64,000 nt of DNA, taken from NCBI GenBank assembly GCA_010909165.1, contig MU008189.1, positions 310,001 to 374,000 on the forward strand, written 5' to 3'. Shown here piece after piece: positions 21,813 through 48,214 of the stretch (its first letter is position 1; every line of letters starts with the position of its first letter). Below the pieces are notes generated by a model that did not search any database, was not told where the DNA came from, and saw only the letters and a list, made by a program, of their open reading frames with translations. This DNA is from Anthoceros angustus (lineage: Eukaryota > Plantae > Anthocerotophyta). The position numbers and the translations under genes are program-made.

Positions 21813-22125
21813 CCGGGAAGGGTTTGCTCAGGATGCAGGTGAGAAGCCTTTGCTAGGAAGCGTTTGTTCAGGATCCAGCTGGGAAAGCGTTTGCTCAGGA
21901 TGCAGGTGAGAAACGTTTGCCAGGAAGCGTTTGTTCAGGATTCAGCTGGGAAGCGTTTGCTCAGATCCAGCTGGAAGGCGTTGCCCTAGGATTCAGCTGG
22001 GAGGCGTTTCCCTAACATTCAGCTGTGAAGCGTTTGCTCAAGGTTCAGCTGTGAGGCGTTTGCTCAAGGTTCAGCTGAGAAGAGTTTGCTCCAGATTCAG
22101 CTGGGAAGCGTTTGCTCAGGTTTTA
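21813..22125. repeat. Minisatellite, ~22-25-bp unit GAAGCGTTTGCTCAGGATTCAGCTGG
   Basis: About a dozen imperfect tandem copies are visible, 130 bp upstream of the HCF164 start codon. Confidence 0.9.
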
Positions 22126-22565
22126 CTCCGTGCTTGAATGCTGGCAAAGCTGTGCAACAGATTCCCCCTTTCATCCTATTTCTGATCATGAGACGTGAGT
22201 CAAGAAAAACATGTCTTTTTTATCTTCTTGGCCCTGCTAAGCATAGGCTGCGATGATCCATGGTGCGGTTGGAGAACTGGCCATTGGCAAACATATGCTC
22301 ATCAATCCAAAGTTTGCGTAGTAGGTAGTCTGGAGCCCCTTTCAGCACCATCGTGATGTATTCATGCATCATACATTATCACGGTATAATTACCCTTACC
22401 CCTTAGTAAGGGGTCCGTAAGGGTTTTTTTTATTACACTTAAATTACACCAAATTACAAATTTATTACAGTTGTAAGTTTGGTAAAATTACATTGTTTAC
22501 ATAATTTACATTTCGAACAGGTCGCTCAATCAGGGCTGACTTGTACTTTGTCCGCGGAGACCTGG

Positions 22566-22815
22566 TTTCGGTGGCGGATGAGGTGGTTACTGACCCTACT
22601 GGTTACTGACCCTATTTCGGTGGGGGATGAGGTGGTGACCCTATTTCGGTGGGGGATGAGGTGGTTACTGACCCTACTCGTTACTGACCCTATTTTGGTG
22701 GGGGATGAGGTGGTTACTGACCCTACTGGTTACTGACCCTACTCGAGACACATCTTCGCTCAGTGGCGGATAAGGTGGTTACTGACCCTACTCGAGACAC
22801 CATCTTCGCTCAGGT
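22566..22815 (+). repeat. Compound minisatellite of GGATGAGGTGGTTACTGACCCTA / GGTTACTGACCCTA units
   Basis: Tandem copies are visible directly; the unit translates as (VA)DEVVTDP. Confidence 0.9.
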
Positions 22816-25900: not shown

Positions 25901-27287
25901 AAAAACGGATGAAAACCCGACCAATATTGAATGCGCTTGATAGGTATGCCGGTGGGGCGTGCACAAGAATGGAAACCCTAAAATCACCTGCATTGCGCAT
26001 CAAACGCACTAGCTCGTCAGCAAGGGTGTATCCAGAGGGGCACAACATAGTATCCTGGCAGCACTGTGCAGCAGTACCTGAACCAGTGCAGCGTACGAAA
26101 CTGCTGTTACAAATTCTCACAGTGACAAGGTCTGCAAACATGGATGTAAAATTTTGGGTAAGAAAGAAACACAAGTAGATTGAGAAGGTGGCCGACGATC
26201 AACATCAAGAGGTTCAAGCAGCAGGGGTGGTGCATAAAGCAACACATTCATCTTCACTTGCTCCAGTACTGCTGCTGGCTTGTGCACATGGGCAGGCTAA
26301 GGTGATCTATCAGCTGTGTCCCATGCTGCCAGCTGGGGGGGAAAGAAGACCAATTTGTCTCCAGCTGTTTGCTGTGTTTTTCCCAGCTGACCTAATGTAC
26401 TCAGCTGATTTGGTGATTCATGACAATCACCAAATCCTGATTTGGTGATTCATGATTCTCAGGGTCTCTCGATCTGTCAGTCGGGTGCCGTAGTTGCTAC
26501 TTTGTTGTGACAATAGCAAAAGACGAAATCGCACTTGCAGCATTTGCTCAGCGTAACCTAAAACCGGAGCCGGTTTGTGCTAGACAGGCTAGTTGCCACA
26601 ACACACAAACCGGATAAACCAGATGACAAAGACGAGCTATTAAACCTACTCAGCACTCGAATGACACGACCGATATCTGACTCCCATTGTGAATCCCAAT
26701 TGCAAACGTTTCGCATTCAATCTCAGAGCGACAGTTGCAAGCGGCATCTTTTGACACGCAAACAAAGGAGACGCTCCAAACCTTATCTGCATAGCATCTG
26801 GGAACGTAGAAGGAAGGACGACTTGTGCAGCATTGCGCTAGGCACAGTGCTTACCGATTTTAGCCAAGTCTTGGAAAGGAATCACGAGGTCCGGATCATC
26901 TCTGGTGCAATTTCGATAACAGAGCTTATGGAATGCACTCTCCTGCAACATGCTGTGAAGCGGGCTCACCACACGAGGGATAGAGGACAAGGAAGAATCT
27001 ATCAAAATGGAAAATGCTGCAGAAAGCCTGCCCGGCTACGTCGCCGCGACTTCCTCACTTCTCACAGCACATGCATGCATGGCGGGCTGCTGATCTGCTG
27101 TGGAGTTTCGTAACGCCCATGAATGCATATAAAATGCTGTCGTGATCCAACTTCCAAGCAATGCCCTTGAAACTGGTGCCTCTCTCCTTCAGTCCTGAAC
27201 CAGCTACTCCGCAACACATTCAAGTTCAGAACGGTAGAGCCTTGGATTGCACAATTGTTGCCCTCGAAAACAAGCAGCTGTTGGATC

Positions 27288-28819
27288 ATGGACTGGGTTG
27301 ATGCAATCCTGCTTGCGGTAGCGGGATTGTTGGCCATTGTCCATATTGCGACTCAAGCAGATAAGTGGTCCAGCAGCGGAAGAAAGTTTCGCCTTCCCCC
27401 AGGCCCGCCAACATGGCCAGTGGTGGGAAACCTCTCCATTTTCTCCGATCCCAGTCCCCACTCCCGCCTGGAGGAGCTGGGCAACAAGTTCGGACCTGTC
27501 ATGTCCATCCGCCTGGGCTCAAACCTGGCTGTGGTTGTCTCATCCGCGGACATGGCTAGAGAGGTGATGAAAGTGCAGGACAACAATTTCGCATCCCGAC
27601 CCCCGCTTACAGCCTTCCATCACCTGGTTTTCCAGGAAGGAACGTGCGGATTTCAACCCCTCGGACCCAGGCACCAGTATGTGAGGTAAGCCTGATTGAT
27701 GGTCGTTGCAAGATTACAAATCTTGCAACCTTAACTTGCCCTGGTGCACACATGATGGACATGGTTCAGTTTTCAGAAAGATCATGGTGACAGAGCTGTT
27801 GACTTCCAAGCGAACTCAGCGATTCGAGGGATCCAGAAGCCAAGAACTGGATGCTGCCATCAAATCCATTCTGCACAAGAGTGGGCAAGAGGTCGACATC
27901 CACCACCTGGGAATCACTCTGACCATGAACAACATGACACAGATGTTGATGAGCAAGCGCTTCTGTGAATTCGAGCCTGGAGAGCAGATTGTAGAAAAAT
28001 CTGCCCTGGTTAGCTCCAGAGCTTCTTCTATCGTCCTTGGCCGAAATCCTGGACGAATCTGAATCCATATGCTCCAGCCTGGAGCATTTCAAGAGCTAGC
28101 GTGCATAAAACGTCCTGACATGTGGCATCTATGGTGTGCAGGTAGATCCACAGGAAGCAGCCGAGTACGGCTGGTTGATCTGTGAGATCAACCGGTTGCT
28201 GGGAATCCCTGTGCTCGGGGACAGCATTCCTTTCCTGGGATTTCTGGACATGTTCACTGTAAGGAGCATGCAGAACTCTAGGAGCAGGCTGAACAACTTT
28301 CTGTCCAAGATGATCGATAACCAGGCAGCGAATGAGCCAATCCAGTACCCCCTAACCACATGACTTCCTTGAGGTATTGCTGAACCTCCAGGGGGAGAAA
28401 GTAGTCGACAGAGATCAGGCCACCAAAGGAATTTTGACGGTAGGACAAACCGAAAGCTTGATCATCCGACCATGATGGTGTTTTGTGCACGCCAGATATA
28501 CTGTATATGCTCACTCTCAGATTGTGTGTCGTCCTGAGCTGCGATCGCAGGATATGTTGCTTGCTGGAGTCGACTCCTCTGCCGTGGTAACAGAATGGGC
28601 TTTGTCAGAACTGTTCAGGAACCCGTGCATGCTAAAGAAGGCACAGCAAGAGGTGGACTGGGTTGTAGGGAAGGATCGTCAATTGCAGGAATCAGATCTG
28701 GCTAATCTTCCCTACGTTCATGCTGTTGTGAAGGAGACGCTGCGACTGCATCCCGTCTCTCCCTTACTTATCCCACATTATTACTCCATGCAAGACAGCA
28801 CACTTGGGGGCTACGACGA
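27288..28819 (+). pseudogene. Cytochrome P450 (CYP71 clan) paralogue, frameshifted and 3'-truncated before the heme motif
   Basis: MDWVDAILL..LPPGPPTWPVVGNL, RKIMVTELL, AGVDSS, KETLRLHPVSPLLIPH. A frame change at about 28320-28360 is needed to reach HDFLEVLLNL. The sequence switches to retroelement DNA right after GGYD. Confidence 0.85.
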
Positions 28820-31100
28820 AAGCATAAGGCTTTGTTCAGCATGTCGTCTTCCGCCTGTTGGATGGCTTCCAACACCATCCGTCGGAGTGAGCGGTACTCC
28901 GGCCGCCATCGGGCTTCTGGTGCGCCGCTGCACCCCCGACGTGTTGTTGGAGGGCCGTAAGTGTGTCCACCACGGCCCTGCGTCCTTCCGTCAACCTGAG
29001 CCCTGTCACGGCTCGAAGCTGAGACCGGAGTTCCGCTACTTCGGCCCGGGAGTCCCTACCCTCCAATTCGCGGACCCGGTCTTAGAGGAGCTGGACCTCG
29101 GCTATTAACCGCGTTCGGTCCTCCTCCCTGAGAGTCCGCTCCGCCACCCAATTGTGGCCGGTCTGCGTCTGCTCCAGCCGTAGGAGGCCGAGCTCGGCCC
29201 GGAGGGCGATCGCTTGCCGCCGTTGAGCCGCCTCTCCTGTCTGTGCTGTGCTCAGAGCGGCGTCCGCTCGATCGGCGCGCAGGATGCCTCACCCGCCATC
29301 GTGAGGGCTCCCTCGGTGCGCTGGTTGGCTTCCCCCAGCTTCTTCTGGAGGTCGCCCCGTTCAAGATAAAGTTTTACTTGGTTTGTCTTGAGTATGTATA
29401 TCATTTGAAAGATTTGAAAAATCTTTTTGCGACGTGCTTCCGGCAGGCCTCCTGGGCCTCCGTCTCCTTCTGGGCCCAAACGGTCCTTGCCGCCACCAGC
29501 GCGGCTTGGACCTCTTCCCGTTGGCTGGCCTCTGCGGCAGTCCTCGCCTGAGACGCTTCCTCTCGGCGTAGTCGGGACTGCTCCTCCTCTGCTGTCCGGG
29601 CTGCCCGCCCGGCTGCCTCGAGCTGCTTGGTCAGCTCGGCTTTCTCCCGCTCCAAGCCATCAGCCCGGGTTTGGAGCTGCGCCGTTGCGCCCTTGGCCTC
29701 ATCCCTCTCGGCCTGTAATCGAGTGTTGTCTTCTCGGATCCCGGCGGTGGCGTCCGTGATCCGGCTGCGAAGGTCCCTCAGTTTCTCCTCCGCTTCATCT
29801 ACGGCCTTTCGAAGGGCGACGTTTTCGCCCTCCCGGGAGGCGGTTTGGGAAAACGCCCAAGCCAACCCCTCCGCCACCGTGGCCATCACCCCCTGAGCCG
29901 CTGCCGTCGCCCCTTCGGACGTTGCTCCGTCGAAACGTCAGTTGGAGTCTGGCAGCTTGGCCCGCGTGAAAGAGGACCAAATGGCCCTCCTCATGGCCTC
30001 GGGGTCGGTGATGCCGCCGTCGATGAGGACCTCCAGCACGATCGACCAGGGGAGATACTTCCTCCGGTCGCGCTCCTCCTGCTCTGGTCGGGGAGCCGGA
30101 GGGGGTATCGTACCAGCCGGCGGGGGGCTGGGCGACTTCGGACCTCGCCCCTTCTTGCGACCGTGGGGCGACGGAGGCCTCTTCGCCCCCGATACTCCGA
30201 TCCCGTGCTTCTCGTTGTAGTCCAGCTGGGCGGCCAGCTGGGCTAACTCCACCTGCTCCCTCGTCAGGGTGGTGTTGCCCGAGAGGGCCCACGGGAGCGC
30301 AAAGTCCTCTGGCTCCGGACTGGTGGGCCTCCGGAGCTCCGTCGGACCTTCCGTCATAGTCCTCGACCTCTTGGTGGTGGGCCCGCCTGCCCGCGTCACC
30401 GCCGGTCGTTTCCGACTGGGTGGTGGAGTCGCCACCCGCGCGACCGGAGTGGCCTCGACCCCCGTCGCTGGAGGGGCTGCCGGTCCTGAGGCCCCAGTGT
30501 CCGCCGGACCTGACACTGGCTCCTACGGGGCTGGCAGTTGCGATGGCTGAAGTGGCAACTGCACTGGCTGTTGAACCGGGCAGGTCCGTCGCCTTGGCTC
30601 TGCCGCGGGGGTACCCTGAGTTGGAGGGTCCCCGGAGCCTTTTGCGCCCGCTGCTCTCAACTGCTCGTCCTCCGATAGAGCGTTGAAATGCCCCCAAATA
30701 TGCGTCGGCGCCAGCCTTGACGGCGGGGGCTTCTCCTGGCGAAGTCGCTTCACCTCCGCCTGAATTCGATGGGCCACCACCTTGCCCCAATCCACCCGCT
30801 GATTCTCGGAGAGCCCGTAGACAAGCAACAGCACTCCGTCGGCGATGTGGTCGGTCTTCTGCACCAGCACCCAGTGCACGAAGAGCTTGGCGACCGCGCG
30901 CACCCGCTTGTCCTTCAAATCGTGAATCAACCACCCGTTGGAGGTCTTGAAGGACCCTTTGGTCAGCATCGCGTCCTACGCCTCCTTCAGCGCTGCTTTG
31001 TTGCGCTGCGCGCCAAGGTACAGCCCTCCGCATTCCTCCGAGGGCCGGTCGTAGACGGAAGATTATACCTGATTTGGCGGGCCCATGAATCTACCTTCGC
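28820..31100 (-). mobile_element. Internal fragment of a retrotransposon (Ty3/Gypsy-type accessory and coiled-coil ORFs)
   Basis: GC-rich co-oriented ORFs at 30523-30969 (SNGWLIHDLKD..VDWGKVVAHRIQAEV), 29938-30516 (Pro-rich) and 29401-29889 (coiled coil). They resemble accessory ORFs of plant Gypsy elements. No LTR was seen. Confidence 0.6.
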
Positions 31101-31329: not shown

Positions 31330-33430
31330 CCCTATGGCATACCAAAGAGGACATAGGAGACGGGGCATTTTTTTTCTCGCGAAAGCCATGCAAGGCATAG
31401 GCATCTAAAGGAATATACCCTACATTCCAATACGGATTGTTTTCACAAAGCAAGGTGTTATTATGTCCGCTTTGGCGCCTAACCAAGAGCGGCCAAGCAC
31501 CAAAGGGACACACACTTTTCCTCCTCAAACAAAGCAGGTGTTTGCTTCAAAATTTTGTGTCCTTCCAACTTTGAAAACAAAGAGCCGGACACTATGTTTT
31601 CCTGCCTTCCGCCCTACCTTCGATTATGTTTTCTTGATGCTATCCCATGGCGCCAAACCCTAACCCGCCCCATCGGTTGCCAAACCCTACCTCACCATGC
31701 ATGGTCTTCAGTAATGGCCGCGGCCGACAGCCATGTTTGCGAACCACCGCACACGCCCACGGCCGTGTCCCCGTCTTCGCAGACTAGGGACTTTGCAATC
31801 GTGTATTTGTTAGGAACCCGCGATCGAAACATTAGCATGATCCTCTTCCAAAGCGGGAAGAAGCACGATCCCTCGAAACAAGCGGTGTTTGCTTCAAAAT
31901 TTTGTGTCCTTCCAACTTTGAAAACAAAGAGCCGGACACTATGTTTTCGCCTTCCGCCCTACCTTCGCGATTATGTTTTCTTGATGCTATCCATAGCGCC
32001 AAACCCTAACCCGGCCGCCATCGGTTGCCAAACCCTACCTCACCCATGCATGGTCGCAGTAATGACGCACGGGCCGACGGGCCATGTTTGAACCTGCACA
32101 CGCCCACGGCCGTGTCCCGTCAGCCTAGGGACTTTGCAATCGTGTATTTGTTAGGGAACCGCGATGGAAACATTAGCGATGATCCTCTTCCAAGCAGAAG
32201 CACGATCCCGTCAAACAAGAAGAGGGGATGAATGGAACATGGAACATGTCACGGCTTTAGAGGCGGGGCCTTCACGGTGGCATACCTCTTATTACAGTTG
32301 GGTGCACTAAACATCGTCCATACAACTTCAATCCCCACATCATGCCCAAGTCCTTGAACAACACCATGATTCCAACCCTTCTATACTACCAAGTCGCTAT
32401 ACGCGAGACCTTTCATTCCTCCGGTTCTGCGGTGGCCATCGGATCCCAAGCTGATGGGAGGGAGGCGGAGGAGGGCCGGAGGTCGCGGAGCGTGAGAGGA
32501 GGGGCCGAGGCGGGGCCGAGGCGCCGGCCTCGGATGGAGGAGGCGGGCATTTTTTCTCGCGAAAGCCATGCAAGGCATAGGCATCTAAAGGAATATACCC
32601 TACATTCCAATACGGATTGTTTTCTCACAGCAAATGGTGTTATGTCCGCTTTGGCGCCCTAACCAAGAGCGGCCAAGCACCAAAGGGGACACACACTTTT
32701 CCTCCTCGAAACAAACGGGGTGTTTGCTTCAAAATTTTTGTGTCCTTCCAACTTTGAAAACAAAGAGCCGGGACACTATGTTTTCCTTCTTCCTACCTTC
32801 GATTATGTTTTCTTGATGCTATCCATAGCGCCAAACCCTAACCCGGCCATCGGTTGCCAAACCCTACCTCACCATGGCATGGTCTTCAGTAATGACGCGC
32901 GCCCGACACGGCCATGTTTGCGAACCCTGCACACGCCCACGGCCGTGTCCCCGTCTTCGCAGCTAGGGACTTTGCAATCGTGTATTTGTTAGGGAACCCG
33001 CGATGCTGGAAACATTAAGCAGCATGATCCTCTTCCAAACAGGAAGAAGCACGATCCTGCTCGAAACAAGAAGAGGGGATGGTGCTGGAACATGGAAGCC
33101 GCCTTCACAGCTTTAGAGGCAGGGCCTTCACAGCAGCTGGCATACCTCTTATTACAGTTGGGTGCACTAAACATCGTCCATACAACTTCAATCCCCACAT
33201 CATGCCCAAGTCCTTGAACAACACCATGATTCCAACCCTTCTATACTACCAAGTCTGCTATACATAGAGACCTTTCATTCCTCCGATTTCTGCCATCACC
33301 GATCCCAAACGCTGCGGATGGGAGGGAGGCGGAGGAGGACGGGCCGGTCGCGGAGCAGTGAGAGGAGGGGCCGAGGCGGGCGGGGGCGCGGATGGCGAGG
33401 CGGAGGGTGAGGCGGGCGAGGCGTATGGCG
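31330..33430. repeat. Complex tandem duplication A-B-B'-C-A-B-C (B about 345 bp; A-B-C about 860 bp)
   Basis: A anchor GCGAAAGCCATGCAAGGCATAGG at about 31379 and 32558. B anchor TTCAAAATTTTGTGTCCTTCCAAC at about 31545, 31893 and 32727. C anchor CATACCTCTTATTACAGTTGGG at 32281 and about 33141. Confidence 0.9.
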
Positions 33431-34041
33431 AGCAGACTCAGCGCAATATCAGTTCTTGAAAGCCTCTTTTGCGCTTTGGGCGGAGGTTGCCACCCTTTCT
33501 CATATCAAGCAAAACACGTGTTTTTAAAAGAGATGTCTTGAATGGCGGGTTCCACTTAGAACAATGTAAGTAATATCGAGGTTTTTCCATGTATGCACAC
33601 TTTTGTTTTGATCGCGTCGGCGCACCCTTCCAGACTTACTGGGGAAAGGCGAGTGCCCGACTATGGGTCCAAAACACGTAATATGCATTCAAATCAAAGT
33701 CGGGCATTTTCCACGAAGGGTCAAAAGCAGGAATTATACGGTCAACGGACGAGCCCCTCATCTACAAGTCACAGCTACCCAAAGGGTCATCTACTTCAAC
33801 CAAATTGAGCTCCGAATCGCACCGTTTCTACATTTTCCAAATCCACGCCTTTCCGTGTCACCAAAGTCATCGCCTTCAACTGCAAAGCGAGCGTCGAGCC
33901 TCTTACTGCGGTAGTAGTGTGCCGTTTTCATCCCATATTGTCAATGCCAGTTGGTCTTCAACCGGCCGGTCGTCCTGGGGTCTGCGGAGTCCTTCATTCT
34001 GACCCTTCTTTCCAAGCAAGCTATACACTTGCATTTTCCTG

Positions 34042-36906
34042 TCAATGCCTCCGTCTGCACAGATCTCCTTTGCCCAAAACTTGCAGGCCCCAAAACTTAT
34101 CTGTTATTTCTTGAACTCGTCCGGCCGCTCCGTTCACTCGTTGTGACATATACATTGAGCATCGTGCGTCTTTGTCAATGGCCCTGGCGTTCCTTTTCCG
34201 TTGTATCCGGCCACCAAAATGATCCCGATCCCGCACGGTCAACAATCCGATCGTCTTCGTTGGAGAACATGTTCACCAACATGCCTAATAAGCCCACGGG
34301 TTTACGATATGGCGTCGACCATCTTATCACCGATGTGGTAAATCGACTTCTTCACCACGGTCCATGTCGGATAACTCTTGGCACTTTTGTTTGATGTCGG
34401 GAAAAGAGGAGCTTTTCCGACATTGGACTCTGTCCTCACTGCGCTTCATCAAATATTCCACTTTCACGGCACCAGCTTAGGTGGGATGTTGGTTTTCTCC
34501 CATACCAGGGTCTGAATGACTCCTTTCCTGCACCAAGACCTCAAAGCCTCCCTGGCTTGAATCACCCCATCCACCCCATGCATAAGAATTATCCGGAACA
34601 CATCGCTCGTGGTCTTCTCGTTGAAAGAGCTGATGATCTCTTTCAATTCTTCTTCAACGAAAGCCTTGTCATTCTCATGCCGCTGTAAACCTCGAGGGAG
34701 GTCGCAGAAAAGAAGAGTATACCTCCTCGGTGGCAAAAATCCTTTCATATCCAAAATGTCTCGATGCACCACGATATGCCACTTTGTCCAAGACCGGGCA
34801 CTCTGGCTGCTCACCACCATCCATGTCCTTGTCGGCCATTTGTTTTCGCTCTTCTTCCATCCGTTTCGATTCGCGCTATAAACAAAATCTTGGAAAGGTT
34901 TTGGCGAGCTTTCAAATCCTCAATGTCTCCCGGTTTACGCAAGCAGCGGTGGTGGTCGAAAACTCATTGGCGGCTGGAGTCGCGGTCGGTGGCGCACTTT
35001 TGTGCGGTCGCGGCGCCTCCACCAATGAACCGGCCACGGCAAATGCGCGCGGTGGCGGCGAGTCGGTCGGCCAGCGTCAGCGGTCGCGGTCGCAGCGCAC
35101 TAGTCGCGGCGGCCAGCGCGATGCGCGGTCACGCCTGCGTCGCGGCCGGCGCACTCGCGTTGCCTCTGGAACAAACAACAAGAGTCGCGGTCGGCCGGCG
35201 CACTGATCGCCGGTGGCCGGCGCCTCTATACACTCACTTACCACTTCATAAAAATTGTTTGAAACCAATTCCTTGGCCTCGGTATGTTTGGGAAGCTGTT
35301 TGGCGACTTGATGTCGCACACTTCATAGCCTTCGAAGGCATGCTCGATAAGGTTAATCTTCTTCTGCCAACATGTATCCATATCTTTTAGCTGCGGTTTC
35401 CTTGGATGACCTTCGGGTCACGCTATCAACATCTCTTCACCTTTCGTCCTTGGGACTCCTTGGAATGCTCTCCATGCCCTTAGAGCATTGGAGCCGGACG
35501 GTCGATTAGGGGCCCACTGTGTAGTTGGGTCTTGTGGCTTCCGTTTGCTTTCGCCCCGTCGTCACAGCTGTTCACCGCCGGGAGTTCGCACTTCTCCCAC
35601 ATCGGAAAATGGTGTCCACGTTCTCCCACAATTTACCCCTGCACCTCATCCTCAGCAGCGAGTCTTCCATCCACCATCTTACATGCATAATCGTGTCCTT
35701 GGAGTTTCCAGCCTCCTCCGGCATCCCCAGCAACTTGTACACATTGAACTTCCACCACAGTGGTTTTCCATCGGTGTGTCCGGTGCCAAATCTCAAGCTC
35801 ATCATGTATGTAGCGACTTGTTCAATAAAACCAAGCTTCTTCCTCTTATGCATACACATTGTGATCAACGCCCGGACCCGCATTTCTTCCTCTGTCAAGC
35901 TGCATATACATGGCCCTCAAGCCATTGAAATTTATCTTCCGGATACATTTGCGATTATAGCATGGCGGCATAGCAATGGTTCCCTCCCGGCACCCCTAGG
36001 GTGTAATCTTTGAGCTCGATCTCCTCGGTGCATCTTCTTCTTCAAGCACCGTCTTTGGATCAATCATGCACAAAGTGGGAGCGTCCCTTCCTTCAGGACA
36101 CATGCGCATCATCGAACAAGGCACTTCATCCATGCCTCATCCACCTTCCTTATCGAGCATCGTTAGAAATGAAGCGGGACGTAAATGGATATGTGAATGT
36201 CGAATGTTGTGGTTTGCACCCGCTTCTTGTAGGCCCGAGTCGAACCATCTCCGGATAGTCATCCTCCTGCGAAAGGAGCTCCGGTCGTTCGGCATCGTGG
36301 TCGTCCGGACAGCTTCCTCTTCGCATGCTTCCTCGACTTCCTTAATTTTTCCGCCTCGCCCACCTCTTCTCCATCACCACGAGATCTTGCCTTCCTCTTT
36401 CGCTTGATTGGTGTGCTCTCTGCATGGAAATCAAAACAAGATGCTTCAATTCTTACATGCGTTCATTGCGGAGGCGGGGCAAGCATTCTTATTCGCCTTC
36501 TCATCTTCGGTGACACGGGCAGTTGCGGATTCCCTTCTTCTTCTTTCTGGTGCGGCTGCCCGGCGCCTCCTCTTCGGACGAGGAGGGTCACCTCCTCCTC
36601 AAAAGCCTCATTCAAGACCCCGAGGCTGGACATGTTGCGAGCCATGGGCCCCTCGAGCTCGCCTCCGCGCCGGACCACGAGGCGAGGCGCTCCTCCTCTT
36701 CCGGAGGCTCGGCTCGGCACAGCCACCGGAACCTCGTCCTCCTCCATCTCCGGTTGCATAATCCGGGCATCGTTTGATGCACACACAACCCACCCGCTGA
36801 TAGCGGCGGTGCGTTCACCGCCTCGCTGCCCGATCACCGGTCGATCACTACACCTCTGTTCTTGACACCTTGATAGCGGAGTAGAACGCAAAATTGTTCT
36901 CCCCAT
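34042..36906 (-). pseudogene. ParB/Srx-like domain plus beta-class N4C/N6A DNA methyltransferase gene, frameshifted (decayed or sequencing-error-disrupted)
   Basis: Reconstructed across frames. ParB-like: SIRKVDEAWMKCLV..ELKDYTLGVPGGNHCYAAM..YPEDKFQWLEGHVYA.LTEEE (GGNH at 35976-35987). MTase: VVHRDILDMKGFLPPRRYTLLFCDLPRG (motif IV, 34689-34703), QTLVWEK (about 34500), KVEYLM, MVD-PYRKPVGLLGMLVNMFSNEDDRIVD-AGSGS-LVAGYN-KRNARAIDKD (motifs X, I, II; 34165-34312). Confidence 0.8.
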
Positions 36907-38129
36907 TCATTTTAAAGAGGAAAACAATGAGTAAACCGGCTGAAACCCTAAGCGAAAATGGGAAGTGATACATGGTGACATACAATGACTTACATCTTGA
37001 ACACTTTTGGAATCACGCATAAGGCCGATTTCAACTGGGCAGCTCGACGAGGCATTATCTTGGCAGCATCCATTATCGGCGGAGATGTGTGTTGATGTCA
37101 TCGTTTATGTGCAAATGAGGTTTCTTGGTGACCAAAAGCGTATGTGCATATCTTATTCGTCCTTTGTTGCACATAGAATCCATCCTCTTGCACAGGAATC
37201 CCCTCAATACCATTGTAACCGTTAATCCATAAGGCCGGTAGTGGAATCCAAGGCACTGGATCTTGGGTTCTTCTTCGCAACAACGCTCCACTCTTTATGT
37301 CATGTTGTACCGCCGGAAGAGAATCCGGAGCTTTTCACCGGCCTCCACAAAGTTAAAAGCATGAGGAATCGCGGTGTTGCATTTCCACGAGGTTGGTGCT
37401 CCCTCGGCCATCAATGTCTTCATATCCTCTCCTGACTACCCTTTGAGGTGGACGTCCGGACACTACCATGAGAGGATTCTCTCAATTGCATAATAGCGGT
37501 GGGGTTCTGTTACCACATTCGGGGATCCATCCCCTCATCCGTCGCGCCCTTGCAGCGATCCTGCTGCTCTTGCAGCCGCCGCATTTTTCCGCTTCGATGC
37601 GTGGCGGCCTCCAGCAGTGAGGGGTCGATCTCTGCATGCTTATTGCTCCGTAGCGTCCTCGCGATCACCATCCTGCAATCTTCAAAAACCTCTGCGGGAA
37701 GTTGGCGGGAGGAAGTAAGAGAATTGTCCGGACTCTCGAACTCTTGATGAAAAGGAGAGGCTCGAGCTTACGTGGAAATGAAATATGGATGTTTGAAGCG
37801 CATCAACGGGATTACGATAAAGCCTTAACACACCGCTAGTTACGCTTGGCTCAAGTTGTAGCAACGGTTGGGTTCAACACGGTCATCATTCATTTAACCT
37901 CAAATGCCTAAAATAGGCCCATTACAAATTCGATGCATCCACCTCATCTTATGCCGTCATTTTCTAAGATGTGCACTCTCATTCAAGGTCCATCGATTCT
38001 GCAATTCTTATCATCCCCCTCGCAATTATAAATCATCCAACACCACACGGTACCACCTTATGTCACATGTCTATAATTGTGGGTGTGACTTTGATCTTGA
38101 TTCAAAGTGCGTTCTTCCCTCGCATGCAG

Positions 38130-39345
38130 GTAGCTCTTGAAAATTTGCCGATGTTGAAGCGGTGGAAGGAGTTCTTGAAGTCAAAGGACTTGGATGCTAT
38201 CGTTAGGCGAGCGAGATTCCTCCCGATATGCAACACTCGGTCGAGGCATCAGCGCGGTTCCACTTGAAATGCCTATCGGCGGTCAAGGTATTCAAGTTGA
38301 AGAGGAGAACTAGATGAAGGTGCAAACTCGTGCGGAAATCGATTGCATTCAAAGGCTCTTGAACATGATTCCGGATGTGTGTTATTCGTCTGCGGTGCAC
38401 GGCCTCCACCACTTCCGCGATAAGCGCATCCATTCCAAAGACACCTGCCCGTTTCAGTATGTTGGATTCCATTCACGGAAGTCCTTCTCCGCCAGGACAG
38501 GCCTCGCCGTACATCCCGGCCATCCGCAAGACTACTCCTCTGGGAAGTGCTCCACGCCGGGACGACACGCCGAATTCGGATATGGCCGCTTCCGTTGGGG
38601 TGAATGCCAACTCGGTTTGCAGACCGGTTGTATCTAGAAGATACCTGTTTCCACCTGCTGTGGCCCCAGCACGTTCGGTGGAACCTGTTGTGGAGGAAGA
38701 GGACTCAGATGACAGTGCATTTGAACATCCACCTCCAAAGGCGTACATACAATTTGAAGCCCGGGTCCGAATCATTTATCGAGCATGGCGACCACCACGT
38801 AGGCCAAGTAGGCGGCAATCTAAAGTGCACGAGATGAAATGTGAAGAGGTTCGTATTACGTGATTTTAAAACTGTTGTGGTAGACAATGCTTGAGGACAA
38901 TAGGGAAGGCAACCTTTTGAGATTTGAGGTATCGGTTCCTTAGAATGTGCGAGGAGGCGGAGATGCACCTACAATCCCTTTTGATGTCGATTATGAGGCG
39001 ATGGAAGGGTTAGGGTAGACTCGTTTCTTGTCGGACGAGGAAAAGTGTATTGTTGTAGAGGCCTTGAGCGTTTATTGTATCGGGTCTGGCAGTGCAGAAG
39101 CGGCGAGGCGATCGGAAACATTGCGTGATGCGCGCCTTCGTCTGGCCAAGATCGACATCTTTGCTGTGACTCTGGCGTGGATGAACCAACTTTATGCTTA
39201 TTGCCGAGAGAATGCCAAACATTGAAGTGTATCACCTTCCTGACTCTTACTCAAAAGGCGAGGTGTTTCAAGAATACAAGCAACATATGCGGCCTTTCGG
39301 TCTGATGTTTCTCATTCCTACTTTTTGTCGACTTTGGAGCTCTTG
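38130..39345 (+). pseudogene. N-terminal half of a CMC (CACTA/Mirage/Chapaev)-type transposase, disrupted; catalytic core absent
   Basis: NCCGRQCLRTIGKATF.DLRYRFL (about 38870-38940), then LAWMNQLY..AERMPNIEVYHLPDSYSKGEVFQEYK..PTFCRLW (39170-39340). This Cys-rich plus MP-x-HLP-x-K-x-TF-x-LW pattern is recalled from DUF7869-associated transposases. Confidence 0.6.
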
Positions 39346-39954
39346 TAGACTTTCGCTGATGGCCAGCCGGGCGCGCACAATCCCGTGTCGTTGTAGGAAG
39401 AAGTCCGTTCCCAAGGGAATGGTTTCGTGCTTAATGCTGAGCTCTGACCCTATCGCTGAGCGGACTTCATCATGTTGGGTCCGGCGGCTCCACAACCCTA
39501 AGTGTGTGGCCCTCCACAACTCGTCGGACCAGACGCGCAGCCACCGGACCTTCCCACAAACCCCGCCCGGGTTTCTCCAGTACCACCGGAACAGGTTTAG
39601 CGACGCGTTCCTCCGTCGGTCTACGTACTCTAGCGGCCCAGCGCTCCTCAACTCTGTCCGGCCACAACTCCACCTCAACACACACGCCGCAACGCGACCC
39701 TCCTCTTGTCCATCACCGTAGTCACAACACCGCCGATGTATTCACACCGGGCCGCCTTTGCCCCTTAGGGCTTCACGTTCAGAAGCGCTTGCGACTACAA
39801 CCCACGCTCCGTTCAGCCTCAGGATGGCTTCCTTGAGTCACCCCAAGCGCCTCCTAATCCCCTCAGAGCCTTCACGTTACAAGTGGCTTCCCTGCAACTC
39901 CAGCCTCCGTTCAGCCTCAAGGATGGCTTCCGCGGTCACCCCAGCGCCTCCTAA

Positions 39955-40179
39955 TTGTAAACGCCAACGTTGTAAATGACGCTAAACGGCTACCCGGACA
40001 CCTTACCCGTCCGGTTAGGTGACGTGGCGGCCACGTCAGAACTTGCTGACGTGGCAACCTTGCCGCCACGTCAGCATTTTACAACCTAGTTGTACATAAA
40101 CGTAAATGCCCGCTTTTACAACGTGAGGTTGTAAATTACGTTGTAAAATGCGCTGTAAAACACCGCGATTCTTGTAGTG
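39955..40179. mobile_element. CACTA element terminus: TIR plus subterminal repeats
   Basis: Ends ...CACCGCGATTCTTGTAGTG at 40179, whose reverse complement is CACTACAAGAATCGCGGTG. It is preceded by direct and inverted TTGTAAA/TTTACAA and GACGTGGC/GCCACGTC motifs. Confidence 0.9.
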
Positions 40180-40559: not shown

Positions 40560-40990
40560 GAGTCCAATGAGGACCCTCTGCCAAGAATATTGCTTCTCCG
40601 GAGAGAAGCTTGAAGGCCATGCAACCCTTCCTTAGAGAAAGAGGAGAAAGGAGGCATGGCTTCCTAGCCTCAAAAGGAAAGGGAGTCCCTAGCCCGCCTA
40701 AGAGAGACTCGAAGGCCCTCCTCAACACTCGAGACGAAGGCTTCCCGGAAGGGGAGTCCTGACAAGAATCGAGAGGCCAAAAAAGCGAGGGCCCAACTCC
40801 CGAGGAAAGCCGCCAGAGCCGAGGCCTCCATGGCCGCAGTTGCCTCCAAAGGCCACTAACAATGATGCTGTTTCCATGCCAAGTCACCGCCGACGATTCA
40901 AAGGTGCCGGACGATAATGTCCCCAAGCGCCTACATANCAACCGCACCGCAGCTTCCTGGCGTCGCCCGAGCCCCGATCCCACTTCACAA
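40560..40990 (-). mobile_element. Possible CRE-like RT C-terminal fragment
   Basis: Minus frame ASALAAFLGSWALAFLASRFLSGLPFREAF resembles the A-x-x-LGSWA motif downstream of the RT in CRE-type elements. There is a single N at 40938. Confidence 0.35.
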
Positions 40991-43900
40991 GGCGGCTAGC
41001 AACCGGCCCCATACTAAAGCTAGATTCAAAATCAAGGGTGCACCAAACCGTGGCCAAAAATGAACCCTTTTATCACCACTCACCCCGGTCAATGACCACT
41101 TTCTTGCCCGTTTTTCACCTACGAAGGTTAGTTCTCACCTCGCGATTAATTTTCCTACTAGGATTTTTACAGAGTAGACATTTTTCATATTCATTCCCAT
41201 ATATTTAAAACTCCATCAATTTCATATTTCATTAAATATCATCAAATATTCTTTTTCCATAATTATTTTATCCTAAGCTCAAAATTTACTCAAGAAGTAA
41301 ATCAGCTTTAATTTTACTGGGAATCATTGTCCATATTTTCTTTTGCTAGTTCTATAGCCCTCAACACTATCTACAACTTTGCTTCACATTGTATAGTGAA
41401 AACACGACTTGAAGGTCCTCATTTTCAAATCCTTGTCGAAACTATTTTACGAAGTTTGTCATTTTATATCTCCTTCATGAAAATCCAATGACAATGAAAC
41501 TTGGTCCATGTACTTCATACTACTTTTGAGACTACTCAAAAAAAAGTCTATTACTATTGTCATGTGTGAGATATTTCAAATTCCTCTAAAGGTGACAAAA
41601 AGTGACACGTTGCCCTTGTTTCGTCTGTTACCACTGTTAGTGAATACTCAAACCATGCATGCACCCAGAGGGACAGCAATCCTTGGATAGTGTTTGGCAG
41701 CCTTCCACGACCCCTGACGACGACGACACAAGACTAAACGAAGACACTAGGGCCTTGGGGGAGAACGATAGCCGATGAAGAGGAAGTGGGCGCATTAAAT
41801 CGCTATTGTGATGGATTCGAGTTACTCTACCCCGGACGAGTCCCAAGTTAGCCTTAGGGAGTAGGCTTAGTGGTCTCATGTCATGTGCATCTGCCGCCAG
41901 CTTAGTTCGCAATCACTTATGGACCCGTTGCATTGAGGCAATTGATGTCTTGATTTCCCTTGTTCAAAGAATCAATGAAAAGCGCGGCCGGCGCCCGCCA
42001 CCGCTTTCATGTCTTTGTTGTGCGATAACAGTTTTTCTCAATACCTACTCGTTGGAACATGGTCGACCTTTTTTTAAAAAGAGCCAAAACGCGTATTTCG
42101 GGACTGTGTGAATTGTGCCAAGGGGGTTTTCATTTCACGGAAGGGGGTTCGGATATTCACACCCTTCACAAGATATCGTGTTGCCGGTAGAAAGGCTTGG
42201 TGGATTGGGTGGGAAGGAGGGCAAGAGAGGTTACGGAGAAGAGAACGGAGAGAATGGCGTTGAAGACGGATCTCAGTGGGCAGAAGGAAAGCTTCAAATT
42301 CAAGGGCCTCAGTGGAGGTGGTTGAACGCCCGATGGTGCCTTACAAGCAAGGCGTTGAACCGGTGAAGATGTTGAATATATCGTGCCCGCCATTAAACCA
42401 AACACCACAGCCATAATCGAGTTTAGGCAAAACAACGGTAACATATAGTTGTCGCGGAGGTTAGCTTTGAGTCCCCAAACAGAGGTACCAAGGAGATAAT
42501 AGGCGATGACGCATATGCGTAAGCACATTGCACATGGGTGTTCCAAGTTAACTTGGAGTCTAAGTAAAAGCCCAAGAATTTGACACACTCTGAGGGAGTA
42601 ATAAGGGAGCCATCGGGTAGAGAAAGAGTATACTCCTTAATATTTTCCTTGCGCTTGAGAGAAAAATGAATGAGCTCGAACTTGTTGAGATCAAACTCCA
42701 CGAGGTGCGTGGAGGCCCACTCTGAAGCTACATGTAGCATAGCTTGAAGCTTTTTTGTGGATTTCTTGCGAAGGAGCGTTGGCATATGATGTCATCAATC
42801 CAACCAGTGCTGCCGCCCATAGATTGAAGTTGAGAGATAAGGCCGAGGTGAAGAAACGAGAAAAAGAGGAGAAATAGGCGAACCTTGTGGTAACCCCTTG
42901 CAGACCGGCGCAGAGTGTCTGTGCCATCCAAACATAGTGAAGTTGCACGTTGAGATAAAAAGTGAAAGACCCAATGAATTCGATGCGTTGGAAGACCTTT
43001 CGCATAAATAAATAGGAGGACGATGATTAAGCGAGTCAAATGCACCCTTGATGTCCATAAGGAGAAGGGAAAGAACATGGCGTTGTCCCAAGCCCTGAAT
43101 ATCTTGTACTAGAAGAGTTGTTGCATCACTTGTACTCCGTCCTGGCCGACCCCCCAAGTGACCGTGGGGAAGAAGGCCAACATGAGTTTCAACCAAGAAA
43201 GAAAGTCGTGAGGCCATAAAACCCTCCAAAGCCTTGCCCAAGCAATTAAGAAGTGCAATAGGGCGATAAGAACGTGGCAGTGAATAGTTAGCCGGTTTAA
43301 CTTGCGGAGAATGACGGTAAGCGAGTGACGCCACGCTACAGGATGATAACCCAATATAGAGCACGCCTGAAAGATAGATAAATAAAAGCCTTTGAGGAGA
43401 TCCCACTCTCTCTGGAGAAACCCAGCAGCAATAGTGTCTGGGCCCGCCGCCTTCCACGCCTTAACACCAAAGATAGCCTTATGCACCTCGTGCAGAGTAG
43501 GGATCAGCCACTCGAATTGAGAGTTTGCTGAAGGTGGTAGGGGAGGGGTACCGGATGAAGAGGGAAACAAAGCAGATCGGAGGGCGCACATTTGTCGACA
43601 TGAGTGAACAAGTGACCCATCCCAAAGTAAATGGGGGTGAAAGAAGGGAAGCGATAGTAGAGCGATAAATCCTCCAAATAAGTCGCTAGCCTGCAAAATG
43701 TCTTCAATGGTCCTTCTTGGCCATTTTAACCATGAAAGTACTCATTCACGGCTCGAAAAATCGCAATGTCCGATGGGCTGGGTGGTGCGCATAATCCGTG
43801 CAGAGCTAGTCCCTTACGCAAAGAAGACAAGGTAAGAGACCACCAAGGTTTGCGGAGGTGAGGCGCTGAGGTAGAGGCGGAAATTGCCCTTTGGAGAGAG

Positions 43901-44780
43901 AGGGTGACTGCGCAACTAGGTGATCAATGAGGGGTCGAGGAGACCTAAACCGACCAAGTTAGTGGAAATTTCAGCAGCTAAAGTGGAGGAAAATTTGACC
44001 CCGTCAATAGCTCTAACATTAAGGCGGGGTGGAGCGGAGGAGGGTTGTGAGGAGGGAGGAATAGTGAGGATTAAACCAATAACTTGGTGGTCAGACCCTG
44101 CCTCAAGATCAGGAAGAATGTCACAGAAGTCTACCAAGTGACGAACATCATTAGAAGAAAGAGTTAGATCCAAAGTGGAAGCGTTATTGGAGGAAGGCAC
44201 ATAAGTGGGGCAATTTGGCGAAGTTAGGAGGAAGAGAGGAGTGGTGTTAATGAAGAGGACAAACTCATCAGCCGCCGAGGAAATAACTTCATTAGATGAA
44301 GAAGATTCCCACAAAGGATGATGGAGATTGAAATCCCTGAGAGTAAAACAATGGTGGGAGAGGAAGGAGGCATGGGGTGTGAGAATGCGAATGGTACTAT
44401 CGGAGTCAGGGGGATTGTAGAGATTAACAAAGTGAACGACGACCAAGAGACTTGGACACATTGGATATCAGGGTGATTAAAAAGGTTCCAGCGGGAAGAA
44501 ATACTACTAGAACAAAGACTTTTGTTAACATAAGTGAGGACCCTAGGGCGAGTAGGGAGGCTGGGAGAGGGGAGGATGGGAGTCCATTGCGGGTGCGAAA
44601 TCGCAGTGGAAGGGTTGATGACATATGGTTCTTGCAAGAAAAGAATGTCAAATGAAGAGAATAACATATTGAGAATAGTGGAGATGACGATACTGGATCG
44701 ATGGCAGTTGAGTTGGATAATCTCGAGAGTGTTCATGAGGGGACTGGCCGAGAGAAAACCTTGGAGTTGGCTGCAAACCG

Positions 44781-45096
44781 AGTGGGGCATGAAGGGTCAG
44801 AGGCTCGATGAGCACCTTGACAGTTGCAACATAGTGGGGCTGTCACCCTACAGTCAAAAGCCGAATGAGGCCCTGCAGTTCAAACACCGCACTCCGCAAA
44901 AGGTTTGAGTGTGACCAAAGCGTTGACATCGAAGCATTGAGTGGGGCATGAAGGGTCGAGGCTCGATGAGCACCTTGGCGGTTGCAACATAGTGGGGCTC
45001 ACCCTAGTCAAAAGCCGAATGAGGCCCTGCAGTTCAAACACTCACTCAACAAAAGGTTTGAGTGTGACCAAAGCGTTGACATCTGAAGCATTGAGT
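44781..45096. repeat. 159-bp tandem duplication at the LINE ORF1-ORF2 junction
   Basis: GTGGGGCATGAAGGGTC..GAAGCATTGA starts at about 44782 and again at 44941. Confidence 0.9.
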
Positions 45097-45963: not shown

Positions 45964-46303
45964 GGTTTGGTGCCAAGGCTAACACCACGGATATTATATA
46001 CAGAGCCTCTTGTTAGTCCATGCCATGACATCTCCCTACTAAGGTAAGGAGCCAAGTATGAGAGGCATGCAGCCCTCCATCTAGTTTAATAAGATATATG
46101 GTTAGTGGTAGTGAAGCTTAGCTTAGAGCTTATGGAAGGTAGTCTATTTTAAGTAGTTATTTGGGATGAAGTAAATCTTCCTAGTAAAGATAAAGAGCCT
46201 TGCGTGAGAGGCATGCAACCTGAATCTCATTCAATAATAGGCAGGCTACTTGGAGGCCTCCAATGCTGGTGTTTGGTAGTGTTGCTGCTTCCACCACCTC
46301 TCT

Positions 46304-46523
46304 AGAAAGGGGGTGTTACTACATACTTACATAAATAGTTTCCAATAAGAAAGGGGGTGTTACTACATACTTACATAAATAGTTTCCAATAAGAAAGGGG
46401 GTGTTACTATATACTTACATAAATAGTTTCCAATAAGAAAGGGCGTGTTACTACATACTTATATAAACAGTTTCCAATAAGAAAGGGCGTGTTACTACAT
46501 ACTTACATAAACAGTTTCCAATA
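46304..46523. repeat. 44-bp tandem array x5
   Basis: Unit AGAAAGGGGGTGTTACTACATACTTACATAAATAGTTTCCAATA at 46304, 46348, 46392, 46436 and 46480. Confidence 0.95.
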
Positions 46524-46751
46524 AGAATTTATGTTAGGTATTAGGTACTTAGTATTATTCTAGGATTGGTGTAGGCTCTGGGTACATACATGGATGTCTA
46601 AATGGAGCAGAAGCGAGGATGTTGCTTGACTTAGCAGCAACACATAATTTTATTTCTCCTAGCAAGGAGAGCAAGCTTGGTTTGACATGGGCTAGTACAT
46701 TTGAGCCATGTAGAGTGAAACAAGCTAAAGGAATGCTGCAACATCCACTCA

Positions 46752-48214
46752 AGTAACACCCCTCACTGCGCAGCTAGTAAGGAAGCGACAAGTGCTGGCT
46801 TCCCAGCGGTCTAGGACCTCGCCAATTCACTCCACAAGAGACTTGCATGATTCTCAACGCTCTCAACCTCACAACACAGCACTAGGCTCCAAGTAGCCCG
46901 CCGTTCACTGGCGACTCGCAGGCCACCTCCTCGAGGTGCTACTCTTTATTGCAAGAATAGAACGATGGAATCTGGCTATCTACGCCCAACTGGCTACTGC
47001 CCTTGATTCCATGACAAGCTCACTAGCTAGCTCTCCACAACTCTCTCAACACAAGGCTTGCAGCCACACTTGCCTGCTCTCTCAAAGAGTGAGTCCCACT
47101 TGTTCCTCAAAGCCCTTGCTCTAGCCCTTATATACCCCCAGACTGACCTTAACTAGGTAGCTTCAAGTAGGAGACAAGGTGTGGGTGAAATTGAAGAATT
47201 TCCCACTGCCGCAAGGGCTGACCTCAAAGTTTAGGCCTAAGTATGGAGGACCTTTCGTAGTTCTGAAGCGCATTGGAAATGTGGCTTACAAACTACAGAT
47301 GCCTGAATGAATCTTCTCTCATAATGTGTTTCATGTCTCTTTGCTGAAACCATTTGTGATTTCGAAAGACAATGAAGATATGAACAGAAAGGATTATGTC
47401 ATCCTGGTTCAACACAATCATAGTGCGGAGATTGTTGAATTCTGGCGGAGAGAAGCGCCCGTCTGTGGTAATGTACCGTAGTATCCGTAAGGCTTTGGTT
47501 ATCACCGGATCTTGCAGGTTTCACTTGAAGATGTGCAACAAGGATCATGCATGATCTCGCGTTACACTGGAGGTCATTGAGGACAATGACATCTTCCCAG
47601 TGGGGAAGAGAGTAACGGTACTGGTGAAACAAGGTAGAAAGGTGAGGAGTTGAAAAAGGTAAAAAGCTAAGTTAGTAGCTGCCCTGTTAAGAAGATGCAT
47701 GTGTTGCATGCTTCATGCAAACTCTTGTTAGAGAGGAATTGCTACAGCCACAAATGAAGAGCTGCCTAGAGAGGACTCTTAGTGATTAGTGGCCTGTAAA
47801 AATCCCTAGTTTTAACAGCTGCCTAGTTAAGGTCAGTCTGGGGGTATATAAGGGCTGGAGCAAGGGCTTTGAGGAACAAGTGGGACTCACTCTTTGAGAG
47901 AGCAGGCAAGTGTGTCTGCAAGCCTTGTGTTGAGAGAGTTGTGGAGAGCTAGCTAGTGAGCTTGTCATGGAATCAAAAGGGCAGTAGCCAGTTGGGTGTA
48001 GATAGCCAGATTCCATCGTTGTATTCTTGCAATAAAGAGCAGCACCTCGAGGAGGTGGCCTGCGAGTCGCCAGTGGACGGCGGGCTACTTGGAGCCTAGT
48101 GCTGTGTTGTGAGGTTGAGAGCGTTGAGAATCGTGCAAGTCTCTTGTGGAGTGAATTGGCTGGGAAGCCAGCACTTGTCGCTTCCTTACTAGCTGCGCAG
48201 TGAGGGGTGTTACT
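46752..48214 (+). mobile_element. Rearranged Ty3/Gypsy remnant: inverted partial LTR, integrase C-terminus, PPT, full LTR
   Basis: 46752-47161 is the reverse complement of 47818-48214. The middle encodes VGDKVWV..RPKYGGPF..VAYKL..HNVFHVSLLKPF. PPT AGTGGGGAAGAG at 47599-47610; LTR 47611-48214 with AGTAAC..GTTACT ends. Confidence 0.85.

Follow-up and report, generated by a model that had tools for sequence, protein, structure and literature searches.

The 64,000-nucleotide stretch of contig MU008189.1 analyzed here (the window) probably holds, at ~33.96-40.18 kb, a decayed copy, non-autonomous and with an internal deletion, of a family of cut-and-paste DNA transposons in which two genes stand head to head. 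The first of these would encode a DUF7869 (PF25273) protein, the presumed transposase, with a Cys motif and an RFX-like winged helix at its N-terminus and a DDE/D-like core; the second would encode a large accessory protein composed of a low-complexity N-terminus, a ParB-looking "GGNH" domain, a helical linker and a C-terminal, phage-type beta-class N6/N4 amino-methyltransferase. An earlier note on this DNA had proposed a transposon carrying its own amino-methyltransferase, with proximity as the only link between the parts. That proposal is borne out by relatives, as the head-to-head pair is present in six other loci from four sources: L001 and L004 in Logan SRR33208241, L008 and L012 on chromosomes of Riccia sorocarpa (GCA_046195345.1), and L013 and L014 in two European Nucleotide Archive (ENA) assemblies. 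Because the pair recurs and, in the two Riccia loci, sits within terminal inverted repeats, the linkage no longer depends on proximity alone. The interest lies in the family revealed in this way and not in the window copy, which is dead and incomplete. The parts of this copy are as follows, each with its support from open reading frames (ORFs), hidden Markov models (HMMs) or position.

33964..34342, minus: C-terminal half of the methyltransferase, which would bind S-adenosylmethionine (AdoMet); tblastn with the P0001/L003, L004, L001 and L006 ORFs
34168-34182, minus: AIDKD, in the C-terminal half
34220-34240, minus: VDRAGSGS, motif I, in the C-terminal half
34298-34312, minus: PYRKP, in the C-terminal half
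34467..34781, minus: N-terminal (predicted catalytic) half of the methyltransferase; phmmer and tblastn
34488-34505, minus: VWEKTN, in the catalytic half
34686-34703, minus: DLPRGL, variant of motif IV, in the catalytic half
35421..36041, minus: what remains of the linker and of the N-terminal "ParB-like" region found in the family; family HMMs and collinearity
35421-35561, minus: piece with LRAWRAFQGV (WRAFQG at 35457-35474); region HMM E 1.1
35575-35916, minus: piece with LTEEEMR (35878-35898); region HMM E 0.053
35958-36041, minus: piece YTLGVPGGNHCYAA, with GGNH at 35976-35987; region HMM E 0.5
36042..37800, minus: presumed 5' part of the accessory gene and upstream region; position only, after the layout of L004 and L008
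38873..39420, plus: N-terminal coding region of a transposase-like gene of the DUF7869 type, spread over two or more frames; phmmer, HMM and tblastn
38873-38893, plus: Cys motif CCGRQCL, an identical 7-mer in L001
39215-39406, plus: winged-helix-like block PNIEVYHLPDSYSKGEVFQEY...FCRLW...IPCRCRKKS
39421..39750, plus: place where the DDE-like core (IDGMDQKKT...LDNT.RENKN...GHTHD.IDQ) should follow and does not
39750..40179, minus: terminal region; in-window repeat and motif analysis
39802-39955: ~98-bp duplication in the terminal region
40020-40038: palindrome TGACGTGGC-G-GCCACGTCA in the terminal region
40047-40073: second, spaced version of the palindrome in the terminal region
40154-40179, minus: end CACTACAAGAATCGCGGTGTTTTACA, reading inward; unique in the window

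The methyltransferase gene and the region upstream of it

The homology of the accessory gene was reached through phmmer against 1.84 billion representative proteins, because Pfam was uninformative on raw ORF pieces: a scan of 29 such pieces from 34-39.8 kb gave nothing useful, and those on the minus strand at 34.0-37.8 kb matched neither PF01555 nor any other Pfam family. With the 151-aa piece 34467-34919(-) as the query, phmmer returned 12 matches (best E 4e-12), of which five exceed the Pfam cut-off for PF01555 (N6_N4_Mtase) in their C-terminal halves; this cut-off is 26.7 bits, and scores of 30-50 bits are reached by P0001, P0004, P0005, P0006, and P0010 and by ORFs of L008 and L012. The catalytic half also aligns by tblastn to L003/L001 (E 2e-18) and to Riccia L008 (4e-11). 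Word-indexed protein searches were far less productive, with only three proteins found for P0001 and only one for the N-terminal region of L004. On sequence grounds, the segment at 33.96-34.78 kb (-) is a relative of the beta-class N6/N4 DNA methyltransferases, its PF01555 membership following by transitive homology, and the beta-class gene described in the earlier note is upheld in this respect. The class itself follows from motif order, since on the minus strand motif IV (DLPRGL) comes ahead of motif I (VDRAGSGS), and the family alignment has the same permuted arrangement of motif IV (D-L-P-R-G or D-I-P-Y-G), W-x-K-x-N, Y-Q-K-P, and D-x-C-x-G-S-G. The relatives further match the phage DNA methyltransferase families phrog_67 and phrog_498 and, at ~25% identity, 210 phage records, including ParB-methylase fusions of ~420 aa encoded beside terminase genes.

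Motif IV separates the family into two clades, and neither has the canonical (D/N/S)-P-P-(Y/F/W). The window and five SRR33208241 relatives read D-L-P-R-G, in a clade that takes in P0001-P0005 and P0019 of that source, whereas the clade of Riccia, the two ENA assemblies and SRR18067573 reads D-I/V-P-Y-G and the phages read D-P-P-Y. As the Arg is kept across proteins that are only 35-55% identical, it is a feature of the clade and not a product of decay. The leading Asp, judged by established motif usage, makes adenine the most likely target in preference to cytosine.

The gene is a pseudogene in the window, because conserved blocks are broken by at least two frameshifts and in-frame stops are present. 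The C-terminal half is read in three different frames, with one frameshift between DKMV and TPYRKP (~34330) and another inside GSGS|GG (~34215), and a stop codon at 34464-34466 follows VWEKTN...LVP. This copy is thus predicted to be unable to make an enzyme.

In the relatives, the methyltransferase forms the C-terminus of a long protein, being preceded by a 517-aa ORF in L004 and belonging to an annotated product of 856 aa in Riccia. The earlier note had described the window gene as fused to a ParB-like domain, and the region in question is indeed present and collinear with the N-terminal region of the family, but its homology to ParB finds no statistical support. Against HMMs built from the homologous region of L004/L001/L003/L007/L008, the pieces holding GGNH, LTEEEMR and WRAFQG are top-ranked among the 2005 ORFs of the window; individually weak, they follow one another as in the family and come just before the methyltransferase domain, with stops and shifts of frame breaking up the region. 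A frame-0 reading of the remnant (PPCYNRK) proved to be wrong, as the HMM placed GGNH in another frame. Farther upstream, 36042..37800 shows no significant similarity in Pfam or tblastn searches; it contains a charged, low-complexity ORF (36466-36906, minus), and in L004 and L008 a low-complexity N-terminus lies ahead of the ParB-like block.

The family block reads R.L...V..L.KKM...(V/F)V.(V/L).P...(K/S)Y.YYV(L/I)GG(N/S)H..A......(Y)P...V.(A/V)GL..(E/D)E......D.N. The ParB signature is a GxxR/DGxHR box and then an acidic helix that terminates in N; the family reads YV(L/I)GG(N/S)H..A and GL..(E/D)E....D.N, with the Arg of the box absent; the window retains GGNH and LTEEEMR. Pfam gave no PF02195 match for the window pieces or for the L004, L001, L007, and L008 ORFs at thresholds from E 0.1 to E 10, and neither phmmer/hmmsearch against the PDB nor a PHROGs search with the region gave a match. 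When the region was aligned with three phage ParB-methylase N-domains by hhalign, in full and trimmed alignments, the score was E 0.18 with a probability of 0.3%, in a register that sets GGNH on GGHQR and the acidic helix GL..EE..D.N on vD.s.eeEkalNvalN. Two AlphaFold models of the region were of low confidence (pLDDT, the predicted local distance difference test, of 44 and 50), and Foldseek returned only noise with them. The ParB label is therefore best kept as a reasonable lead provided by the motifs GGNH and GL..EE..D.N.

The DUF7869 partner and the relatives of the pair

Divergent from the accessory gene, the window holds the remnant of a gene that the earlier note had described as a Cys-rich transposase N-terminus. 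A gene remnant of this kind does exist at 38873-39420(+), but its family is DUF7869 and not TNP2, and its core is missing. The stretch PNIEVYHLPDSY...FCRLW...IPCRC is matched by phmmer at 5e-9 (ORF 254-781(-) of L001 against window 39185-39420(+)) and at 2e-8 by an HMM covering the N-termini of 25 DUF7869 proteins, and tblastn of Riccia L007 and L008 against this part of the window gives 7e-7 and 3e-5. The Cys-motif stretch NCCGRQCLR (38870-38896) stands in another frame than the winged-helix-like block downstream of it. In Riccia L008, the same N-domain occupies residues 469-575, in exon 1 of an annotated DUF7869 protein of 1076 aa (P0056) whose exon 2 encodes the DUF7869 domain (E 5e-55). 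This domain scores 1e-49 to 5e-55 in L004, L006, and L008, and the core is present in L004, L006, L007, L008 and L012-L014. In the window, a core HMM built from L004 and L006 finds no match anywhere (best E 0.85), and the interval 39421..39750 is presumed to be the junction of an internal deletion.

DUF7869 proteins occur in multiple copies in Riccia, and also in two ferns, Ceratopteris and Adiantum; in Pfam they match only PF25273. They conserve IDGMDQKKT.LP, LQLDNT.RENKN, and VGHTHD.IDQMFS, whose acidic residues would fit a catalytic triad of the DD(~40)D type. Resemblance of the N-domain to RFX proteins is weak (RFX5 in the PDB, E 0.17; Pfam RFX_DNA_binding, E 0.016), and with the DUF7869 profile this weak winged-helix match to RFX5 is the only one in the PDB, no solved transposase being matched. 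No paper in the searched literature library mentions DUF7869.

That the pair belongs to a mobile element of land plants, with the methyltransferase gene inside it, is supported by the structure of these relatives. In L008, perfect 21-nt inverted repeats at 4043-4063 and 15055-15075, ~11 kb apart, enclose both genes, and the element sits within an Ion_trans/EF-hand (channel) gene. L012 has 37-nt inverted repeats at 883-918/14464-14500, 13.6 kb apart, and its 89.7% identity to L007 stops at the right repeat. L014 has a perfect 26-nt inverted repeat whose two copies are preceded by CACTG and CACGT, respectively, with the exact tip not resolved, and its 99.6% identity to L015 ends 9 nt past this repeat. 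The arrangement is not uniform, as the two genes are tail to tail in L006 and the accessory gene is truncated in L007. The Riccia elements also carry family-specific perfect palindromes in many copies, ACTGTATGCGCGCATACAGT in L008 and CACCCCATGCG-N-CGCATGGGGTG in L007 and L012; these palindromes are found between the genes, within introns, and close to the end on the transposase side, and L014 has an array of inverted repeats between the two genes. The flanks are ambiguous with respect to a target-site duplication (AAAA/AAAA in L012, TAT/TTT in L014).

Two further observations concern these loci. A 100-N gap at 3944-4042 of L008 abuts the left terminal repeat and leaves its first two bases and the left flank unreadable. 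In the Logan contig of L001, a Peptidase_C48 (ULP-like) gene (11918-12892, minus) and a RecQ-type helicase fragment (15394-15961, plus) are found 5-9 kb from the methyltransferase gene and may be further cargo or part of a neighboring element.

The element end, its surroundings and competing explanations

The element end described in the earlier note, a CACTA terminal inverted repeat with subterminal repeats finishing at 40179, is present and unique, but no mate was found for it in the 64 kb. The terminal region contains six GTTGTAAA/TTTACAAC motifs, with subterminal repeats of the GTTGTAAA type in both orientations, and its two palindromes sit 100-160 bp from the end, with none further inside. 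Going by its position, and by comparable palindromes that L008 and L012 have close to the end on the transposase side, this region would belong to the same element as the genes, and the reading of 40154-40179 as the true end of a deleted element is preferred, if by a little. The left end was sought with exact and degenerate versions of the terminal repeat, subterminal motifs, palindromes and the Riccia-type terminus (AACAKCCGCTA), which is absent from the window, and by running blastn-short with the final 480 bp. The only match was to the inner 13 nt of the terminal repeat, GAATCGCGGTGTT, which recur inverted at 37366-37378 (+), lacking the CACTA tip and at chance level (E 0.37), and are followed there by GCATTT, as they are in the terminus after a 7-nt gap. 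If real, this match would mark out a 2.8-kb element with the methyltransferase left outside. CACTACA strings also occur near genes of L006 and L001, but on inspection they were put down to chance. Different families of methyltransferase/DUF7869 elements have different termini, and those of one family may start with CAC.

The surroundings of the feature are eukaryotic, plant-like DNA. The GC content is ~0.52 across 34-40 kb and continuous with the flanks; it sets the source apart from Riccia (41-45%), which also gave no DNA-level match. The best clue to a land-plant source is a pair of A-type cytochrome P450 genes; a NIF-type phosphatase ORF, a SET-MYND gene, a MEA1-like ORF, and long interspersed nuclear element (LINE) fragments make up the other genes of the window.

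17585-19676, minus: A-type cytochrome P450 gene with one intron
27171-29105, plus: second A-type cytochrome P450 gene with one intron, in opposite orientation to the first; the pair shows a PPGP/PPSP hinge and EWA(L)SEL
8918-10548 and 42694-44796, minus: LINE-type reverse-transcriptase/endonuclease ORF fragments

One of the LINE fragments matches ORF 19697-20080 of Riccia L008 (E 4e-7). A 431-aa ORF and ORFs overlapping it at 29404-31090 (-) have no Pfam family, and the frame at 30526-30975 resembles domains of plant transposon proteins by eye. Repeats are frequent as well. Just to the left of the methyltransferase remnant, a block at 31370-33260 contains direct repeats (families D5, D7, D8, D10, D12, and D14) with spacings of ~340 and ~840-1180 bp, one 118-nt pair being 100% identical, and it may be satellite DNA, a separate element, or what is left of the transposon's disrupted left side. 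Short tandem arrays with units of 26 bp and 67-78 bp are found at 21815-22118 and 22556-22760, and a 44-bp array of about 6 units (46260-46571) adjoins a large foldback at 46752-48214, in which inverted repeats of 56, 184, and 160 nt (97-100% complementary) are nested around a center of ~650 nt; with an 88-nt direct repeat at 46511/48223, this region looks like a foldback element or a miniature inverted-repeat transposable element (MITE). A single N at 40938 lies outside the 34-40 kb feature.

In intact elements, it is plausible that the transposase would bind the ends through its winged helix, while the accessory protein would dock on the family-specific, parS-like palindromes scattered through the element and methylate the element's own DNA. 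This docking model is adopted from the red-algal Plavaka elements, in which a ParB-domain gene stands beside such arrays. The most likely product would be N6-methyladenine (6mA), because motif IV starts with Asp, as in adenine enzymes and in the phage relatives, and the mark could label the element or shield it from host silencing or nucleases. The window copy itself is inoperative, having frameshifts and stops in the methyltransferase, no transposase core, and only one end left.

Several points weigh against this account. The window offers no second CACTA end in its 64 kb, even with up to 3 mismatches, and no target-site duplication, so the status of the copy as an element rests on its relatives; nothing like its CACTA end is seen at the Riccia termini, and that end could belong to another element. 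There is no nucleotide similarity between the window and the fetched relative loci, and thus neither a consensus nor a copy count for the window's own family, and the protein libraries contain no copy of the window gene that is more than 50% identical. DUF7869 is a presumed transposase that matches no solved one, and "DDE-like" is our own reading of its residues. ParB homology was non-significant in every test made, whether by Pfam, PDB, PHROGs, hhalign, or AlphaFold/Foldseek. Finally, the aromatic residue of motif IV stacks on the flipped base, and the DLPRG of the window clade lacks it; even the intact members of this clade may not methylate DNA.

An alternative possibility is that a genuine En/Spm-type CACTA (TNP2, CMC) element ends at 40179 and that the dead DUF7869/methyltransferase fragment is its captured passenger or a mere neighbor. 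The first 11 nt of the end, CACTACAAGAA, are what we take to be the classic plant En/Spm-type terminus, short subterminal repeats follow in both orientations, the Riccia relatives of the pair end differently, and the DUF7869 gene breaks off ~350-700 bp ahead of the end. However, the ORFs of 19.6-42.6 kb contain no TNP2 (PF02992), TNPA-like, or other CACTA protein domain in Pfam, no left CACTA end is found, and the distance and order of the transposase gene, palindromes and end fit those of L008, L012, and L014; in addition, the CACTG and CACGT that flank the L014 repeat, its tip being unresolved, suggest that CAC-type termini may occur within the family. This explanation is accordingly given as unlikely, and the CACTA/CMC class named in the earlier note was not sustained, given the missing TNP2, the DUF7869 partner, and the non-CACTA termini of Riccia.

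Far less probable is a host (domesticated) gene pair, or its pseudogenes, outside any mobile element. No left boundary of an element can be drawn in the window, and eukaryotic co-options of amino-methyltransferases exist (bdelloid N4CMT, PMC8885841; Marchantia DN4MT1, 10.1101/2021.02.12.428880), but frameshifts and stops run throughout both window genes, and the relatives are multi-copy, bounded by inverted repeats, and in one case inserted in another gene. Least probable of all is a misassembly that brought contaminant, endophyte or phage DNA into a plant contig. The bacterial or phage type of the methyltransferase domain would suit such an origin, yet there is no step in GC content at the flanks, the kind of damage to the gene is that of eukaryotic transposable elements, the neighbors include LINE fragments and plant A-type P450, SET-MYND, and NIF phosphatase genes, and homologues with introns reside in chromosome-scale Riccia scaffolds; nothing points to contamination. 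The decayed transposon copy with its head-to-head pair is thus retained as the probable explanation.

Significance and comparison with known systems

DNA methylation in land plants is treated as a system of 5-methylcytosine (5mC), with the N4-methylcytosine (4mC) of Marchantia sperm, written by a bacterial-type enzyme of unexplained origin, as the one exception. A multi-copy transposon family of liverworts and ferns that carries a phage-type amino-methyltransferase is a concrete source of such enzymes within plant genomes, and it makes self-marking of DNA by a transposon open to testing. The family would also extend to land plants what was reported only for red-algal transposons (methylase/ParB) and fungal transposons (TET/JBP), and it suggests a likely function, that of a transposase, and a genomic context for the Pfam family DUF7869. 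A bolder proposal, which we consider unlikely, is that DUF7869 elements form an undescribed superfamily or deep branch of land-plant cut-and-paste transposons, that they encode a ParB-like, palindrome-reading amino-methyltransferase that would write 6mA or 4mC on the element, and that MpDN4MT1 and other enzymes of the PF01555 type came into liverworts with such elements of the Marchantiales (Riccia).

Phage ParB-N6_N4 methyltransferase fusions of the ParB-terminase locus have been described (Iyer et al., 2016, PMC4738411; PNAS 2025, PMC12704722), and independent acquisitions of phage ParB-locus methylases by eukaryotes are listed (Iyer et al., 2016, PMC4738411). The fusions compared here (L009-L011) share with the transposon family the beta-class motif order, an Asp-first motif IV, the x(K)P and GSG motifs, ~25% identity, and an N-terminal domain followed by the methyltransferase, with GGNH/GGHQR and the acidic helix in register in the hhalign alignment, at a non-significant E 0.18. 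The phage proteins are ~420 aa long with a canonical TDPPYN, whereas the transposon proteins are about 850-1100 aa long, have DIPYGF or DLPRGL, and contain a long helical linker.

Plant En/Spm (CACTA) elements resemble the window copy in the terminal CACTACAAGAA and in short subterminal repeats in both orientations. They differ in that the window copy has DUF7869 in place of a TNP2 (PF02992) or TNPA-type gene, that its genes are divergent and not co-directional, and that it has only one end. Fungal KDZ/Plavaka transposons are reported to carry TET/JBP dioxygenases (Iyer et al., 2014; PMC12730594) and are similar in being DNA transposons with a DNA-modification enzyme as an accessory gene; they have a 5mC oxidase where the present family has an amino-methyltransferase, as well as another transposase and another host kingdom.

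Bdelloid N4CMT (PMC8885841) and Marchantia MpDN4MT1a/b (10.1101/2021.02.12.428880) are single-locus host genes with demonstrated 4mC activity, and the Marchantia preprint gives no transposon link. Compared by description, these enzymes and the window family are alike as permuted, PF01555-type enzymes of prokaryotic origin in eukaryotic nuclei, Marchantia being in the same order as Riccia; the window family is distinguished by being transposon-borne and multi-copy and by an Asp-type motif IV that appears adenine-like.

The closest precedent is found in red algae, where giant Plavaka (EnSpm/CACTA superfamily), Zisupton, and Mutator elements of Bostrychia moritziana carry a PAG cassette (10.1101/2025.02.11.637652). 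In these elements, methylase and ParB genes are separate, most copies are degenerate, and the cassette moves between transposon families; in Plavaka, inverted-repeat arrays lie beside the ParB-domain gene, and binding of the protein to the arrays has been proposed (10.1101/2025.02.11.637652). Methylase cargo, perhaps with a ParB-like region, and inverted-repeat arrays occur in both the red-algal elements and the present family, which were compared by description. The red-algal methylase is fused to SET (PAG2) and the ParB domain to a 2-oxoglutarate (2OG) oxygenase (PAG3), in separate proteins accompanied by Plavaka or Zisupton transposases, and at the methyltransferase loci L004, L008, and L012-L014 the accessory ORFs match neither SET nor 2OG-oxygenase. 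In contrast, the window family, which is found in land-plant hosts (liverwort and ferns) and in unidentified assemblies, combines the GGNH region and the beta-class methyltransferase in one protein and has DUF7869 as its partner.

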